Sequence record: NC_031010.1
Length of the DNA: 64,000 nt
Direction: 5' to 3' (one strand)
Positions within the stretch are counted from its first letter, which is position 1. Each line of letters opens with the position of its first letter. Under the pieces are notes generated by a model. The model was not told where the DNA came from, did not search any database, and saw only the letters and a list, made by a program, of their open reading frames with translations. Shown piece by piece: positions 9,699 through 64,000 of this stretch. Made by a program: the position numbers and the translations under genes.

Positions 9699-9741
9699 TA
9701 TACTTCCTCGGAGACGGGTGATTGGGCTACATACTAAGTCT

Positions 9742-57730: not shown

Positions 57731-59058
57731 TAGACCGCAATAGCACGCACTAAGAAATACAAGAGAAGGGCCGTACGTACCGCAGAGAGGGCAGCGGCGT
57801 CTCGCAGGTGGGTCTCTTTCTTGGCAAGGGCTTCGATACGCTTACGCAGGGACAGCACGTATTCGTTCGAGGCCTTGGCTGCCTGATAGAGTGCCCGCAT
57901 CCGGTTGAGCAAGGCTGCCACGTCGCGAAAGTTAATGCGGTTAGCCACAATCAAATCAAACGAGTGACTGAGTGTGTCCTCCATAATCGCCTCAACCTCT
58001 TGACGCTTCTTCCCTAGGGGTAAGTCGGCAATGTAGAGTAAAAGCGTTTTAAGGGCGTTAGGCGAAGCCTTAGGCACCATCTCGAGTACCACACGGGCCA
58101 ACTCTTCCTTGTACAGGTTGTTGATGCTGTACGACGCATCGAACAGGTTCTGTTTGGCCGTGTTAAACGCCGTGACCTTGTCGCGAATAATCGACTCGCC
58201 GTCCAACTCCACTCGCGCAGACTGGGTAATCACTCGGCTGTTCTCACGACGGACCCGGTCGAGGACACCGTAGTAGTCTTTGACCGTTTGTTTGGTACGG
58301 GTGTTGAGGTCGGTGATAAAGCGAATCAGCAATCCCGGCTGGTCGAACTTCTTGATGGTTTCCCAGTGTGGGGACTCCTTGGAGCAGAAGTCCTGTGCAC
58401 GTTGCTCAATGTGTGCGCCCCAGTTGCCCAGACGACGGATGTCGAACTTCAGGGACAACTGAGAATAGGTCGCCTCAGCCGCTGGCATGTCCACGGGTTT
58501 CGGGAAGAAGTGGTAGTAGATGCTCGAGTAGAACTTAAACTGCAGCAGCTTGACAATCTCGACCGCAGCTTTGTGGAAGTCCTTGTCACCGAACATCGGG
58601 ATCATGCGATGCACCATGTACGCCACCGTCAGGTTCATGGTGTCGGACGCCACGTTCCACGTCGGGTCAACGGTTTTGGTGTTGGTGATAAGTTCGGTGA
58701 GTAGGTCTTCATCCACCACGAGCACTTGGTCGAACAGGGCATAACGGTCGGTGTCGAAAAAGCGGATGGTGTGCACGCCAAGCAGGTTAGACCCAAACCA
58801 CTCGATATTTCCCTCACGAGAAAAAACACCCGAAACGTAATGCATGATTCGTGTGCAGAGTTGTTTGTTGAACGTGACCTTTTTGAACGCTTCATCAAAC
58901 GCTTTGAGGAGGGCAGGATTCTTCAGCGATTCCGTGGCAATTTTCTGCTGGTCGTCGTAGTCGTCATCATCCCAGTGGCGTTGTCCATACGGGACGTGGC
59001 TACGGTGCCCACCTTCGACATATCCGCCCCGATTAAAATCATATTGTAACTCTGGCAT
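57730..59058 (-). CDS. Putative virion head protein (SPN3US gp262-like position)
   Basis: 442 aa, helical; N-terminal acidic propeptide ending in ATE (prohead-protease-type site). Confidence 0.55.
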   Translation of the reverse strand: MPELQYDFNRGGYVEGGHRSHVPYGQRHWDDDDYDDQQKIATESLKNPALLKAFDEAFKKVTFNKQLCTRIMHYVSGVFSREGNIEWFGSNLLGVHTIRFFDTDRYALFDQVLVVDEDLLTELITNTKTVDPTWNVASDTMNLTVAYMVHRMIPMFGDKDFHKAAVEIVKLLQFKFYSSIYYHFFPKPVDMPAAEATYSQLSLKFDIRRLGNWGAHIEQRAQDFCSKESPHWETIKKFDQPGLLIRFITDLNTRTKQTVKDYYGVLDRVRRENSRVITQSARVELDGESIIRDKVTAFNTAKQNLFDASYSINNLYKEELARVVLEMVPKASPNALKTLLLYIADLPLGKKRQEVEAIMEDTLSHSFDLIVANRINFRDVAALLNRMRALYQAAKASNEYVLSLRKRIEALAKKETHLRDAAALSAVRTALLLYFLVRAIAV

Positions 59059-59081
59059 AGGGGAACCTCTAACTTTTTACG

Positions 59082-59109
59082 GATAGATATTATAAATGTG
59101 ATAGTATAC
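59082..59109 (+). promoter_or_regulatory. Putative early promoter, class A
   Basis: GATAGATATTAT-aaat-GTG-atagtatac. Confidence 0.6.
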
Positions 59110-59144
59110 ACCTATAAATCTTTTTAAATCATAAGGAGTTATCA

Positions 59145-60281
59145 ATGTCTGGTGAACTACTGCGCAAGGTCGACTGGTTCGACCAGATGCGAAAACAAGA
59201 AATAAAACCCGAAGAGCAAGTTAAGCTCTGGATTCAACCTCATGGGTGCCTGTGCGAAATTCGTGAAGTCGCAGGCCTGCCGGTTTTAGTGAACGGCGAG
59301 CACCACGTACTGAACTCAACCTTTGCACGCACGTTGTTTGATGCGGGCATCGTCGGTCATGTGATCATTCACACAACCGAGAGTATTCCACAAAACACCG
59401 CGAAGTGGTTGACGTGGTGGTTGAGTGGAGATCCAGCAATGGACGATGAGAAGGTCCGTACCATTACGGTTTACACCTTCAGCCGTCGACCGAAAATGGC
59501 ATTGCCGTTTAAAGTCGAAGTGGTGGAACCGATTCTGCTACAAGCCAGTAACGTCAAATCCACCGTTGGGATGCAATCCCGTAACCTTCAGGTTTCACTC
59601 TTCGTCGTAGAGCGAGCCAACGGGAAGCGGTACAGTCTCGAGCCGCAGCGTTATGTCACCTGCACAATCCTTGCCTGCACACAGCATGGCTATGTCTTGT
59701 GCTCGGACAATAACAACGTGTTCTTGGCTGATAAAATTTCCCGACATGTCCAGGCGCAATTGCAGAACGCAAAGTTACGTACGGATGATTTAGTCGGGAC
59801 GCGTGTGAAAGTCCAGTTCACGATGTACACTGATGGTCAACGGCTTTGCAACTACAAGAACCCGATTGTGCATCGAAGTAGTGCCCTCGACGACATGGGT
59901 GCTCTCAGCAACCCGGCATACGATGGCCCGTATCTCTTTAAGCCATCCACACAACCCCGCAGCGCAATGCTCACGTCGACGCGCTGTACCCGTGCACGGA
60001 TTACCCTCGAGAACGAGGTAATTTGTGGCCGTGATGCCGAATCTGGCGCTATCCTATTCACATTCCGCAAGGGAGTAGAACCCGGTGTATATGGGGCGGA
60101 AATGGGAATCGGTGGTCAGGTCGAACACTGGCGATTTGAATCTCCCTACTCTGTTGACGCATTAGACCCGAATGGTTTTGTGCGTGTGCTCGAACCGTTG
60201 ATTTACTTTGCAACGGGGTACAGCCTTCAGCGTATTGGACTGCACTTCGCCGACCACACAAAGCAGTCTCTCATTGCATAG
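59145..60281 (+). CDS. Hypothetical protein, possibly a degenerate ATP-dependent DNA ligase fold
   Basis: QPHG at the motif I position; LVGTRVKVQF..YT...KNPIV resembles the ligase OB-fold end. Confidence 0.4.
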   Translation: MSGELLRKVDWFDQMRKQEIKPEEQVKLWIQPHGCLCEIREVAGLPVLVNGEHHVLNSTFARTLFDAGIVGHVIIHTTESIPQNTAKWLTWWLSGDPAMDDEKVRTITVYTFSRRPKMALPFKVEVVEPILLQASNVKSTVGMQSRNLQVSLFVVERANGKRYSLEPQRYVTCTILACTQHGYVLCSDNNNVFLADKISRHVQAQLQNAKLRTDDLVGTRVKVQFTMYTDGQRLCNYKNPIVHRSSALDDMGALSNPAYDGPYLFKPSTQPRSAMLTSTRCTRARITLENEVICGRDAESGAILFTFRKGVEPGVYGAEMGIGGQVEHWRFESPYSVDALDPNGFVRVLEPLIYFATGYSLQRIGLHFADHTKQSLIA

Positions 60282-60292
60282 AGGATTTCACA

Positions 60293-60796
60293 ATGTTAAC
60301 CGCAACACCAACGATGAGGCCCGCAGTAAACATCGTCTGCCAAGACCGCAGACTGGTGGAACTTTGCGACCAGTACATTATCACTGCCATTCTCAACCAC
60401 CACCCGCATGTCTATTTCGACGGTCCTCAGCTGCTGGCTGCAGCAGCGGTACTCCGTCGACTCGAGGGTCGTCTGACCATCGTAGAGTTCTGCGACTTCA
60501 TGGACAACCAGCCGGACATCATGGCTGGATTAGTTGCGCTGACGCAAGACGGCGTGGGTTCGTTTGACAACGGTATCGGAAACTTCCTGGACTTCAGTTC
60601 CGGCTTTGAGGGTGGCATGATGTTCATCACCAAAGAGCGTTTCGATGCCGTCTGGCAGTTCCTGATGATGCGTGGCGTGAACGTTCCCTACCAGCTGAGT
60701 ATGTTCAGCCATTGGGACATGAACATCATGGGCGAAGCAGGGATTTGGGTCAAACCGATTCAGCTGGCACTGGATGGCAACACCATCCACGCCTAA
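60293..60796 (+). CDS. Hypothetical protein
   Basis: GAGG RBS; 167 aa. Confidence 0.65.
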   Translation: MLTATPTMRPAVNIVCQDRRLVELCDQYIITAILNHHPHVYFDGPQLLAAAAVLRRLEGRLTIVEFCDFMDNQPDIMAGLVALTQDGVGSFDNGIGNFLDFSSGFEGGMMFITKERFDAVWQFLMMRGVNVPYQLSMFSHWDMNIMGEAGIWVKPIQLALDGNTIHA

Positions 60797-60837
60797 GATC
60801 GTATCAGGGGTCGGTGTGTCTTTACGAGCACCGACCA

Positions 60838-60880
60838 TCCTTTTCCACCCATAGGGTGGAACTCATTTCTTTTTTTTTGC
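60838..60880 (+). terminator. Intrinsic terminator
   Basis: TTCCACCC-ata-GGGTGGAA plus a long T-tract. Confidence 0.7.
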
Positions 60881-61039
60881 CTCGGCCCCTAGTGGGACTA
60901 AGAATTGGTCACTTTTTAACCAACCGTTTGACCCTTTCAAAAAGCTTGCTGAAAAGCATTCTAAGCGTTTACAATCAAACCCGGTACATTCGGGTGGCTT
61001 AAGGGGAGAACGTTTACCACAGGGGCGTACAGTGCGTTT

Positions 61040-61510
61040 TAACGGGGGTTGGGGACGAAGTTTGCCGGGGGGATTTGGGAATCGCGAAATCGCCGGGGTG
61101 CGAAATCCCGTTTGGCCGACGCCGCCGCGCCGATCAAAAATACACTAGCGCTTGCGCGATTTAGGGGGATTTAAAATGGCTTAGCCTTGAGAGACGAAAT
61201 CTCTTGAGTCTCTCTGCTAAGTGTTTGTTTTCCTTGGAAATTCTATTTATCTAATTCTAAAAAATACTTATAAATCAATTACTTATTACCTCTTTAAAAA
61301 ATACTTTTAAAAACAACAAGTTACGATCCTAAGTGATCCCTTCTATATACGCGTGCGCGCACGCACGCCATTTCCTACAGGGATCTTTTTGTTTTATATA
61401 ATAAATATTATTTAATTATATTTATATAATTATAATAATAGATCATTATACCGCGCCCCCGCGCGTGCGTGATCTTTATTAAGAGATTTTATTTGGCAAG
61501 GGGTGATCGG
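61040..61510. other. Candidate replication origin or packaging-initiation region
   Basis: Non-coding; 49-nt pure A/T run (61392-61440) between GC-rich blocks; six GATC sites in 61325-61508; G-tracts and CGAAATC repeats upstream. Confidence 0.45.
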
Positions 61511-61559
61511 GGGGTGAAAACCCCCTGTCGAGTTTTTTACAGGGTTGCGTAGTATTCTA

Positions 61560-61885
61560 TGCAATTGCGATGTTCAGCCAAAACATCCAGAGAGACTTCC
61601 GCACCCAACCGACTGGTCATCGTGGGGTGCTTGCCGTAGGACTTGACCCCAGCCTCTGTCCGAGTTTGGCGGTGGGTGTCACAGCCCACCGAACTTTTCA
61701 AAACGCCTGAGTTATTACCTATGGCAAAACGCATTCGGTTTCACGAGCAATCGGGGAACGTAACCAGACTAGCCAGCCAGCTAGTAATCTTCGACCGGGC
61801 ACCGACCCAGCGAAGGCCCACACTCGGATTCAGGTTCGAGTGGCAGTACCAGTTGCTTGCCCCCTTACGCGGGGGCTCTTTTTCG
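61560..61885 (+). ncRNA. Putative structured non-coding RNA 1 (about 320 nt)
   Basis: Dense hairpins, a 10-bp long-range helix (61631-40/61718-27), a GCAA tetraloop; promoter-like motif upstream and intrinsic terminator at 61859-61883. Confidence 0.55.
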
Positions 61886-62895
61886 AATGCCTTCTGACGA
61901 GGACATTGGAAAACGGTGCAACACGACTTCGCCTACGGGCAGAGTTCAGGTTCCTGTCTTACCCACCGTCGCCGTTAAGCTGAGCGGCACGCGGTGGCGG
62001 TTTAGGGTTGCGGTCAATCCGCATTCTGAAATCTTGACGGGTACCGTGGCAGTCTTGGGAGTGAGCGAGGTCGGCGCGCAGATTACGACTGCGTTCGGCA
62101 CCTGCCAGCTGGTTGCACAGCTGCGATGGGTGGCTGGCCTGCTCCCCCAAGATGTGGCCAAGAGCATGGTGTGTCTTCTGAGGGGGAGGGCACCAGTCTG
62201 AAGATGGTCTAGGTTGATCCCCGAAAAGACGTAGCCTACGTCCTGACCAATCTTTTTTTTCTTTAGGCAAAACGTAGTGAGGCGCTATGTTTACCAAAGA
62301 GTATCTGGATTCTCTACCAAAGAGAATTCCCATTGAAGAGCGGTTAGCTTCGAAAACCAAGGTTACAGAATCTGGTTGTCATGAGTATGACGGCGTGAAG
62401 GACCGATGTGGGTACGGCCGATTTAAAATTGGCAAGCACTCTCTCGGTGCGCACAAGGTCAGTTATTTGACCCGCGTCGGTGACTACGACCAGAATCTCG
62501 AGTTGATGCACAGTTGCGATAATCCCGCCTGTATCAACGTCGACCATCTCACACCTGCTACTCACCAAGAGAACATGCAGGATTGTGTCGATAAGGGACG
62601 CCATACCTCCCAGCATCTTGACTCGCCGAGACAAGCAGCAATCGAATCAGGGATGGAGTTGTATTACGGCAGTGTCTGTGAGATTCACGGCTATGACCTT
62701 CGCTCCGTTAAGAACGGGGCCTGTGTCTTTTGTCGCGACGATTACAATGCCAAGAAACGAGAGCAGCGTAGAGTGGCTCGTGAGAGTGCCGCCTAGGGGC
62801 GGTAGGCTTGAAAAGGGGTGATCCTTTTATCTTGGCGGCTCGGAAAGACGAGAGGGGTGGGTGTCCACGCTGAGAAGCGTCGGCACCTAGCTGAT
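61886..62895 (+). ncRNA. Putative large structured RNA 2 with an embedded HNH ORF
   Basis: Multiple helices with UACG and GAGA tetraloops on both sides of the ORF; flanks 62233-62244 and 62795-62808 pair. Confidence 0.5.
62287..62796 (+). CDS. HNH endonuclease (HNH_3 type) with a C-terminal Cys/His zinc-binding motif
   Basis: C.E......GYG.F......AHKVSY.......LMHSCDNPACINVDHL..ATHQENMQD; C-terminal C..HG....NGAC..C. Confidence 0.85.
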   Translation: MFTKEYLDSLPKRIPIEERLASKTKVTESGCHEYDGVKDRCGYGRFKIGKHSLGAHKVSYLTRVGDYDQNLELMHSCDNPACINVDHLTPATHQENMQDCVDKGRHTSQHLDSPRQAAIESGMELYYGSVCEIHGYDLRSVKNGACVFCRDDYNAKKREQRRVARESAA

Positions 62896-62897
62896 AT

Positions 62898-62923
62898 TTT
62901 TACGGGTTAGTTCCTCCCTGTGT
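62898..62923 (+). promoter_or_regulatory. Putative promoter, class B
   Basis: TTTTAC 62898-62903, N16, GTGT 62920-62923. Confidence 0.5.
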
Positions 62924-62944
62924 ATAAAACTCAAGGAGCTAACC

Positions 62945-63682
62945 ATGATTAACCCAAACCTGCTTAATGTTCCGTTATCGCTGGCACAAGTGTTTGGACT
63001 GCTCGGCGTCCCGGCACAGCTGAAAAGCAAAGATTCATCAGTCCTCAAACAGCTCGATGAAGCGGTGTCCAAAGTCTATCTGGGCCATCACCATAGCCCA
63101 TCGCTGGCTGAACCTTCTCGCTGGCTGACCATTGCGGCGGGTGGTGCCGGAAAAGACGTGTGTATCGCCCAAGGTAAGGGCGACAAACGCAGCGATGTCG
63201 AAATCTACAATGCGCTGTTTGCTAGCGCGTTGACCAGCGTGATGCTTCGCATAGCGCGCGACAGTCCGATACATGAACCGCGTGCAGCACGTCCGTTGTG
63301 GGACTTTGTGCCAAAGCGTAATCCAGCTGAATGCGATATTGTGGTTGATGGTGAAGTTATGCCCATCGCCCCCTTCGTCGAATGGATTTGTTCGGTCGAC
63401 GACGAATACCACAACCAGTACGCAGCTCTCCTCGAGCGGGATTTTGAATCACTGCAGTTCATGCGCTTCCCGAACAACGCGGCGGTTGCAGTTGTCGGTA
63501 AACTCAATCCCAAAGCCGGCGGGTACTGTGTTCCAGTTTGCGTGACGTATTACGAAGGCGTCAACGGTACGCTCAAGGCGATTTACGAAGTCATCCGCGT
63601 TTACCACAAATCCACGACACGGACGAACACCTTCGACTACCTCACGTCAATTAACCCGAGCGTGGATGAGTCTGCCCGCTAA
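62945..63682 (+). CDS. Hypothetical protein
   Basis: AAGGAG RBS; 245 aa. Confidence 0.7.
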   Translation: MINPNLLNVPLSLAQVFGLLGVPAQLKSKDSSVLKQLDEAVSKVYLGHHHSPSLAEPSRWLTIAAGGAGKDVCIAQGKGDKRSDVEIYNALFASALTSVMLRIARDSPIHEPRAARPLWDFVPKRNPAECDIVVDGEVMPIAPFVEWICSVDDEYHNQYAALLERDFESLQFMRFPNNAAVAVVGKLNPKAGGYCVPVCVTYYEGVNGTLKAIYEVIRVYHKSTTRTNTFDYLTSINPSVDESAR

Positions 63683-63685
63683 TCT

Positions 63686-63711
63686 TTTTACAGACAGTCG
63701 CTGAGATATGC
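63686..63711 (+). promoter_or_regulatory. Putative promoter, class B
   Basis: TTTTAC 63686-63691, N16, ATGC 63708-63711. Confidence 0.5.
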
Positions 63712-63725
63712 GAAAGGAGCACACC

Positions 63726-63926
63726 GTGGCAAAGACTGACATGGTTTTCATCCATGACGAGAAAACCAACCGTCGGTACATCAAACGCGGTGGTGCTCGT
63801 CTGTGCTTAGACACTGAACCTGACCAAGGTGCAGCGCTCTACGCAACGTTTGCAAATGTCACGCCGAAGTCAACCGGCACGATACCGATTATCCTCAAGC
63901 CGAAGAAACGCGGTAAGAGCAAATAA
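63726..63926 (+). CDS. Small basic hypothetical protein
   Basis: AAGGAG RBS before GTG 63726; Lys-rich C-terminus. Confidence 0.6.
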   Translation: MAKTDMVFIHDEKTNRRYIKRGGARLCLDTEPDQGAALYATFANVTPKSTGTIPIILKPKKRGKSK

Positions 63927-64000
63927 AATTTAGCCTGCAAGTTCACTGTAATCCAAAAGCACATTGTCCACTCGGACGTAAAATCGCTTAGGAGAACACC

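Follow-up and report, generated by a model that had tools for sequence, protein, structure and literature searches.

A transcribed and structured non-coding RNA unit, variable at its 5' end and conserved at its 3' end, in Erwinia phage vB_EamM_Kwan and related jumbo phages

Does the segment located at 61561–61885 of a 64-kb phage sequence encode an RNA of its own and, if so, of what kind? A preliminary description of the window (the whole 64-kb stretch of DNA analysed, to which all positions refer unless another sequence is named) had proposed that a promoter-like motif and a terminator bracket a discrete, stand-alone and highly folded phage RNA.

The window is identical in sequence to the terminal 64 kb of the genome of Erwinia phage vB_EamM_Kwan (NC_031010), window positions being the positions of the record minus 182,390. 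Kwan is a 246-kb Wellingtonvirus in which multisubunit RNA polymerase genes are annotated; phage Wellington shares 99.5% identity with it over the region. It is a jumbo phage akin to Salmonella phage SPN3US and phiKZ, and its relationship to SPN3US is indicated by the gp287 product, which is 47–48% identical to its homologues from Seoulvirus and Machinavirus. Genomes of the Kwan type are circularly permuted and packaged by a headful mechanism, base 1 of the record having been set by alignment to SPN3US (PMC5690319); therefore, the "genome end" is not a physical one. No function was obtained for gp286, gp287, gp288, gp292 and gp293 from sequence searches of Pfam, PHROGs and PDB. Near-identical copies of the RNA locus are present in 20 runs (X1–X20) of plant, seed, soil, food-production and fermentation metagenomes or metatranscriptomes, and Wellingtonvirus-like phages therefore seem to be common and active in plant-associated communities. 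The features of the locus are the following:

61341–61480, no strand assigned: origin-like DNA element, with an AT-rich core, GC-rich inverted-repeat flanks and GATC sites
61533–61563, plus strand: promoter P1 (TTTTTTAC, 17 nt, TATGCA)
61561–61858, plus strand: body of RNA1, a multi-helix 5' module specific to Wellingtonvirus-like phages
61859–61883, plus strand: hairpin H0 and U-run, a terminator look-alike and the conserved 5' hairpin of the large RNA
61879–61914, plus strand: helix H1, formed between the U-run with CGA and a UCGA...AAAA-type stretch further 3'
61886–62195, plus strand: RNA2, which makes up the conserved large RNA from its 5' part to its centre, with the UUCAGGUUC loop at 61945–53, ACCGUGGCAG at 62043–52, GGCCAA at 62156–61 and a 3' hairpin at 62168–94
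62196–62828, plus strand: inserted cassette of 633 bp, which interrupts the conserved RNA past the 3' hairpin of RNA2 and ahead of the tail
62202–62267, plus strand: int-alpA-like hairpin/terminator (Rfam, 31.0 bits, E = 0.00047, full length of the model)
62287–62796, plus strand: HNH endonuclease gene, matching HNH_3 and the PHROG HNH families
62817–62894, plus strand: tail, the domain in which the large RNA is conserved best
62895–62944, plus strand: next promoter of the same class as P1 (motif TTTTTACGG) and leader of gp292

The promoter-like motif that had been reported at the start of the segment, a T-rich/TTTACA box followed by TATGCA, is indeed seen at 61533–61563. P1 is identical in all Wellingtonvirus-like sequences save for two variable positions, and its flanks vary. 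It belongs to a class of motifs, TTTTTAC-N14-19-TATG/TATA, found on the plus strand 5' of uvsX, the thyA operon, gp274, gp277, gp287, gp292 and gp293, of gp15 and gp16 near the start of the record, and of the RNA unit itself. Its sites are:

window positions 9741, 19066, 44108, 46324, 59074, 61534, 62897 and 63685, plus strand: class motif
L029 positions 4961 and 5409, plus strand: class motif

The genes located behind this motif are non-structural, and the motif is probably the promoter class of the phage's own RNA polymerase. The P1 site was not called by a sigma-70 scan, and a sigma-70 promoter would not fit the spacing of the motif, which is too variable and too short. In phiKZ, a T(-3)ATG(+1) motif marks the transcript starts of the nvRNAP (PMC7598289), and the TATG of P1 matches it; by analogy with this initiator, the 5' end of the RNA would be G61561.

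Transcription was followed in Logan contigs of four runs, two of them seed metatranscriptomes, aligned to 58001–64000; contig depth is a crude measure of abundance and RNA ends are known from contig starts alone. For the gp287–gp288 operon, contig depth is 53 and 18 in the two seed metatranscriptomes, and no RNA contig of the four runs covers 60800–61570. Beyond this gap, 61571–61852 is covered at a depth of 14 and 61955–62195 at depths of 45 and 12, RNA2 being covered by RNA contigs in four runs. RNA contigs begin at 61571 and 61577, which is consistent with initiation at or just past the TATG of P1. RNA2 is deeper than RNA1 in two runs, a difference that might hint at processing and unequal stability. 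One contig (X19) extends from RNA2 through the tail to 62954, i.e. into the first codons of gp292.

At the other end of the segment, a terminator scan retrieved H0, in which GCCCCC/GGGGGC (61859–61876) forms six G–C pairs followed by UCUUUUU. The GC-rich hairpin and U-run previously described as a bracketing terminator are thus present, but they belong to the RNA that follows, whose 5' end they form. All of the 15 relatives tested have a hairpin that precedes the invariant TTTTTCGA, and its stem covaries. The U-run also belongs to helix H1, for which RNAalifold predicts 17 pairs from 14 sequences of four genera, several of them with GC/AU/UA exchanges, and which is also found in the fold of the Kwan group. 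H0 is located only ~25 nt past the promoter TATG in Machinavirus; in Huxley and SNUABM_6, no promoter was found besides the one ~25 nt 5' of H0. Since H0 lies right behind the Machinavirus promoter and its U-run is within a conserved helix, it is probably not an efficient terminator. Both the conservation of H1, which includes the U-run, and the arrangement seen in Machinavirus speak for substantial read-through at 61859–61883. In X17, separate contigs lie on either side of H0; in X7, a single contig crosses it without a break from 61577 to 62195, in agreement with read-through. Owing to the conservation of the hairpin and U-run and to read-through in relatives, RNA1 can be regarded as the variable 5' module of a larger unit. 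The segment is therefore phage-borne, structured, transcribed and non-coding on its plus strand, as had been proposed, but the proposal that it is discrete and stand-alone is not supported.

The structure attributed to RNA1 fared better. The seven helices that had been named were all found, both in the single-sequence MFE structure and in the RNAalifold consensus of six homologues, which contains 101 pairs, 12 of them with compensatory changes. Such changes affect GCACCC/GGGUGC and CACUCG/CGAGUG and, by eye, also CGGUGGG/CCCACCG, the helices thus being kept in relatives through compensatory changes. As a guard against circularity, pairs taken from the Kwan MFE structure, i.e. from a single sequence, were scored in SNUABM_11: 17 are kept through double changes versus 2–9 in controls whose partners had been slid by 1–3 columns. 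The homologues are those of Wellington, of L005 (99.5% identity), of L006, L007 and L051 (81–87%) and of pEa_SNUABM_11 (76%), the four numbered ones being IMG/VR and metagenome contigs; indels of 22–26 nt are located at a helix tip. In the shuffling check that had been suggested, the fold beats shuffled controls modestly (z = -2.30; none of 100 shuffles equally good) and is not strand-specific, as the minus strand reaches z = -2.13. The repeated loop UUCAGGUUC was recovered at both of the places reported, 61829 and 61945; it has one further copy only in 64 kb (0.77 expected), and the RNA1 copy of Wellington reads UUCCGGUU. A kissing interaction of the UUCAGG loops with CCUGA at 61707–11 was rejected, since the pairing is lost in the L007 lineage.

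The space between promoter and H0 differs widely among lineages. Huxley and SNUABM_6 have ~25 nt there, the uncultivated phage L036 has ~150 nt and the Kwan group ~300–320 nt. L036 carries a shortened RNA1 homologue that retains UUAUUACCUAUGGC and, with compensatory changes, the ACUAGC/GCUAGU hairpin; Machinavirus has no RNA1 counterpart. In Seoulvirus (L010 8700–9540; L019 2740–3580), two promoters and two terminator-like hairpins precede the large RNA, an arrangement that implies two extra short RNAs (~200 and ~90 nt) without sequence similarity to Kwan RNA1. In the same way, the promoter–H0 space of Erskinevirus contains two short RNAs and a second promoter. Identity is 80% for RNA1, 92% for gp287, 94% for RNA2 and 97% for the tail. 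Judged from these distances among lineages, RNA1 is a lineage-specific expansion of the 5' leader, which evolves faster than the flanking genes.

The downstream RNA is of another kind. It is ~380–490 nt long and was found in phages of the genera Wellingtonvirus, Seoulvirus, Erskinevirus and Machinavirus. Folding of RNA2 is strand-specific (z = -4.14 on the plus strand versus -1.05 on the minus strand) and, within the genus, RNAalifold predicts 105 pairs, 8 of them compensatory. The tail consists of a GGUGAUC linker, the near-invariant UCUUGGCGGCUCGGRAAGACGAGAGGGG and a covarying terminal hairpin. According to blastn, 61 records of Salmonella, Erwinia, Escherichia and Proteus phages contain it with ~80–95% identity, and it is 82–97% identical where the DNA of gp287 is 64–92% identical or can no longer be aligned. 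For the whole large RNA, RNAalifold was run on 14 sequences from four genera, and 22 of the 55 consensus pairs are compensatory. Across genera, a long-range helix joins the ACCG of ACCGUGGCAG to the tail CGG(C), and a further pairing, of GGC to the GCC of GGCCAA, shows a CG/UA exchange; a CUCG/CGAG hairpin is invariant and the terminal hairpin shows many exchanges. A second run gave 96 pairs with 89% of the cells paired and double changes in 42 pairs, versus 43–48% of the cells and 13–18 pairs in its slid controls. The most invariant nucleotides are located in junctions and loops. By the pattern of these exchanges, selection clearly acts on the RNA fold.

A covariance model of the tail (R1) matched 19 loci; in its alignment, 97.1% of the cells are paired and 12 of the 21 pairs show changes on both sides, values that none of 500 shuffles reached. 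R1 had no match in the loci examined of Derbicusvirus and of L044, which we take to be Cronobacter phage CR5, and the family may therefore not extend so far. Among 185,579 genomes of bacteria and archaea, none matched a 26-mer of the tail, which was found in six metagenome contigs, two of them ~246–249 kb long. Seven further viral contigs retrieved by a 17-mer scan were all discarded as chance matches.

Two other observations concern the large RNA. In pEa_SNUABM_6 (L027 3333–3571), a natural deletion variant lacks the central domain: the gap lies between ACCGUGGUAG and the tail linker, and H0, H1, the UUCAGGUU region and the tail are retained. The linker (62815–62826; columns ~47–60 of alignment A9) reads GGAGGUGAUC(C) in several lineages, which is a 9–11-nt perfect complement of the textbook 3' end of 16S rRNA, and its GUGGUC variants pair with the latter through G–U pairs. 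It could be a ribosome-binding decoy or a mere coincidence with the GTGATC box.

The order of the locus is shared among genera. Homologues of gp287 and gp288 are followed by a stretch with conserved boxes, by an AT-rich core with GC-rich repeats and, 50–70 bp further on, by the promoter. The variable 5' RNA, the hairpin with the invariant TTTTTCGA, the conserved RNA (380–490 nt from hairpin to tail) and the next genes come thereafter; a tRNA island is located 1–4 kb 3' of the conserved RNA on the same strand. This layout and the tail were first recognised by eye in pEa_SNUABM_29, in a syntenic non-coding gap of 1.7 kb. With nhmmer, the RNA1 and RNA2 profiles built from the Kwan group had no match in the Seoulvirus and Machinavirus loci; homology across genera emerged from reading the syntenic gap and anchoring on the tail. 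The conserved boxes (60843–61000), located 3' of the gp288 terminator, include TTTTTAACC and a GACCCGGTACA-type hairpin at 60979–60996 and are kept across genera; no transcript of them was found in the RNA runs examined.

In Kwan and Wellington, the large RNA gene is itself interrupted by the 633-bp cassette, inserted within the domain closed by the long-range helix. L046 has a similar gap of ~615 nt, and the cassette is absent from L006, L007, SNUABM_11 and even L005, which is 99.5% identical to Kwan. Its 5' edge carries the possible relative of the int-alpA motif, which ends in U8 and whose score is below the gathering score (31.0 vs 35.8 bits). The RNA contigs of X17 and X19 skip 62196–62828; as they carry 20 other letters at the joint, these contigs come from strains devoid of the HNH gene and do not result from splicing. 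The cassette was rejected as a group I or group II intron, since no intron model matches and only 91 + 32 nt lie outside the ORF. The distribution of the cassette among relatives suggests that a homing endonuclease targets a non-coding RNA gene. As the cassette splits the conserved RNA, either this RNA is made in two pieces in Kwan and Wellington or its loss is tolerated.

As a whole, the unit is non-coding, transcribed and structurally constrained; its 5' part is variable and its 3' part conserved. The following model of its operation, to which we give about an even chance of being right, can be drawn. P1 would drive the transcription of a non-coding unit on the plus strand. Transcription would read through 61859–61883 into the conserved RNA of ~400 nt (RNA2 and tail), RNA1 being an accessory domain or leader of the unit. 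As has been proposed for the phage-borne large RNAs GOLLD and ROOL, the conserved RNA would work in trans as a stable scaffold, a decoy or a self-assembling particle that binds a phage or host factor. Selection on the fold, the invariant junctions and loops, a promoter of its own, an architecture like that of GOLLD and ROOL and the vicinity of a tRNA island support a stable RNA acting in trans. Several data count against it. RNA1 changes faster than the neighbouring genes, and its fold z-score is modest and not strand-specific. In some genera, the next gene follows the tail with neither a promoter nor a terminator in between, an arrangement that a leader would show as well. Lastly, natural variants lack parts of the RNA, through the HNH insertion in Kwan, Wellington and L046 and the deletion of the central domain in SNUABM_6, and the large RNA may therefore be dispensable under laboratory growth.

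The DNA element that precedes the promoter raises an alternative. Located 50–70 bp 5' of the RNA promoter in every genus examined, it is 74–90% identical across genera, i.e. more than the flanking genes, and its AT-rich core is 90% identical between phages whose genes are 64–74% identical; its right flank reads GTGATCYTTATTA. Seven GATC sites are found in 61132–61505 although GATC is 2.4-fold depleted in the window, and 4 of the 15 GTGATC boxes of the window lie in 61333–62823, all on the plus strand. This element might be a replication origin that transcription of the adjacent non-coding RNA activates or primes, which would then be the main reason for the existence of the unit. Activation could occur through negative supercoiling behind an RNA polymerase leaving the AT-rich element, in a gidA-like manner, or through an R-loop or primer formed at G-rich tracts, as with ColE1 RNA II or T4 ori transcripts. 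Transcription of gidA has been proposed to activate oriC of Escherichia coli, and the transcripts of T4 oriF and ori(uvsY) form R-loops; a primer of the ColE1 RNA II type passes over the start site of DNA synthesis and stays hybridised there. The constant proximity of the promoter to the right flank, the GATC cluster in a DNA otherwise depleted of this site, the GTGATC boxes confined to one strand and the G-rich runs of the RNA (~62180–62190 and 62850–62862) fit such a role, as does the conservation of the region at the DNA level, which is highest in the AT core and in the tail. However, transcription heads away from the element, over which no RNA contig was found in the four runs, and the wide covariation, G–U pairs included, denotes a selection on the folded RNA that supercoiling alone would not need. 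GC skew, tried as a further indicator, tracks gene orientation and does not switch at the locus, and the element is origin-like by sequence features only. Transcription coupled to an origin is thus an unlikely explanation of the locus.

Could the whole RNA instead be a long 5' UTR, riboswitch-like or serving as a processing platform, that controls the genes located downstream (gp292 in Kwan)? In SNUABM_29, SPAsTU and Machinavirus, the next ORF begins ~25–35 nt past the tail with no recognisable promoter between them, whereas tail and gene are separated by a P1-class promoter, or by a motif resembling a promoter, in the Kwan group, L036, SNUABM_6, Salmonella phage 1252 and Erskinevirus. The X19 contig, which joins RNA2 and tail to gp292, would agree with such a leader, but in Kwan RNA2 is uncoupled from gp292 by the HNH cassette and the terminator that it carries. 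With its invariant junction and its covarying last hairpin, the RNA does look like an aptamer and its expression platform; at 380–490 nt, it far exceeds known riboswitches in size. Likewise, the C-terminal half of gp292 is conserved 3' of the tail in Machinavirus, although the downstream genes vary between genera. A role in cis as a leader therefore appears quite unlikely.

It is extremely improbable that gp289 (61537–61734, minus strand) and gp290 (61959–62150, minus strand), annotated in GenBank over RNA1 and RNA2 as open frames of 65 and 63 codons in Kwan and Wellington, are real small proteins, because stops or frameshifting indels break them in 3–4 of 5 relatives including L005, L006, L007 and SNUABM_11 (a single-base insertion being enough for gp289 in the 99.5%-identical L005), no CDS is annotated there in SNUABM_11, substitutions preserve base pairs and not codons, and the folding asymmetry favours the plus strand. 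More generally, every local ORF is broken in relatives and none is conserved, which bears out the earlier statement that no ORF led by a ribosome-binding site occupies the segment; judged from these frames, 61561–61885 is non-coding. Since its frames are broken in this way, the annotation of gp289 and gp290 is probably spurious, and so probably is that of Wellington gp291 and gp292. In Wellington, gp291 and gp292 overlie the non-coding RNAs and gp290 covers the stretch 5' of the AT-rich element (L002 3015–3350, 3739–3936, 4161–4472); Asesino, phiEaH2, Huxley and SNUABM_43 likewise have small ORFs annotated in the same gap. A small tail ORF located behind the Shine-Dalgarno-like GGAGGUGAUC was rejected as well: insertions of 1 and 2 nt shift its frame in Salmonella phage 1252 and L036, and all of its codon positions are invariant, which counts against coding.

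The RNA could not be assigned to the classes of structured RNAs with which it was compared. The cmscan search proposed in the preliminary description gave no Rfam match for it at gathering score in the window, and no relevant match at E<=10 in 60800–62400 or in the representatives L019 and L005. Its exclusion of tRNA and tmRNA holds, ARAGORN having found 0 genes in the whole window, as does that of RNase P, 6S and SRP RNAs, for which no Rfam match was obtained; the 5S rRNA model was likewise unmatched. A likeness to 5S rRNA through shared words was rejected because local alignment to E. coli 5S rRNA was no better than with dinucleotide shuffles, and word similarities to RNase P and T-box RNAs were dropped, as they receive no support from Rfam.

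Coming back to the preferred reading, a non-coding unit whose conserved 3' RNA would act in trans, a more specific proposal is possible though doubtful. The large RNA would define a new family of large structured RNAs of SPN3US-like, phiKZ-related jumbo phages, functionally tied to an AT-rich element that is conserved even better; it would license or prime replication or form an RNA-only or RNA–protein particle from the start of infection, and its gene would be a homing site for HNH endonucleases. In the literature searched, no description of this RNA locus and nothing on non-coding RNAs of SPN3US-like phages was found; the transcriptomes of phiKZ and 201phi2-1 report small RNAs and leaders only (PMC8244752, PMC11512511). 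The 0.8-kb non-coding unit is supported by covariation, and one of its domains is better conserved as DNA than the neighbouring genes in at least four genera. It adjoins what may be the origin of replication of SPN3US-like phages and, SPN3US being a genetic model, the RNA is open to direct testing. The locus also shows a homing endonuclease that seems to target a non-coding RNA gene, and it leads to the correction of probably spurious CDS annotations in several GenBank records.

Several known systems share traits with this locus. Like the free-standing HNH endonucleases of the seg/mob type from T-even phages, the Kwan cassette carries a small HNH gene, equipped with a terminator and a ribosome-binding site of its own, lies at a highly conserved sequence and differs in presence or absence among near-identical genomes; unlike them, it is inserted inside a conserved non-coding RNA gene and not between or within protein genes. 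The pRNA of phi29 is also a structured phage RNA, transcribed from a promoter of its own within non-coding DNA, but it is ~170 nt long and belongs to phi29-like podoviruses, and the Kwan RNA has no Rfam match. SPN3US-like phages package their DNA by a headful terminase mechanism (PMC5690319). As in the ColE1 RNA II, T4 ori and gidA systems, a promoter next to an AT-rich element produces a folded non-coding transcript of several hundred nt with G-rich tracts; in Kwan, however, this transcript leaves the AT-rich element instead of crossing it, and no hybrid-forming or RNase H site could be identified in the RNA.

The closest likeness in kind is with GOLLD and ROOL, phage-encoded non-coding RNAs of large size with many helices, which often lie near tRNA islands and whose function is not known (PMC12286853). 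A homo-oligomeric cage made of RNA only is a further trait of GOLLD and ROOL. The large RNA is also phage-encoded and multi-helix, with a conserved 3' part and a variable 5' part, and a tRNA island lies 1–4 kb downstream on the same strand. It differs from them in its sequence and helices, the GOLLD and ROOL models having no match at E<=10 in 60800–62400, L019 and L005, in its hosts, which are lytic SPN3US-like jumbo phages of Enterobacterales, and in its constant location beside an AT-rich element. We thus rate the locus as a new family among the large phage-borne structured RNAs of unknown function, and thus as one more candidate among the few large phage RNAs without a known role.
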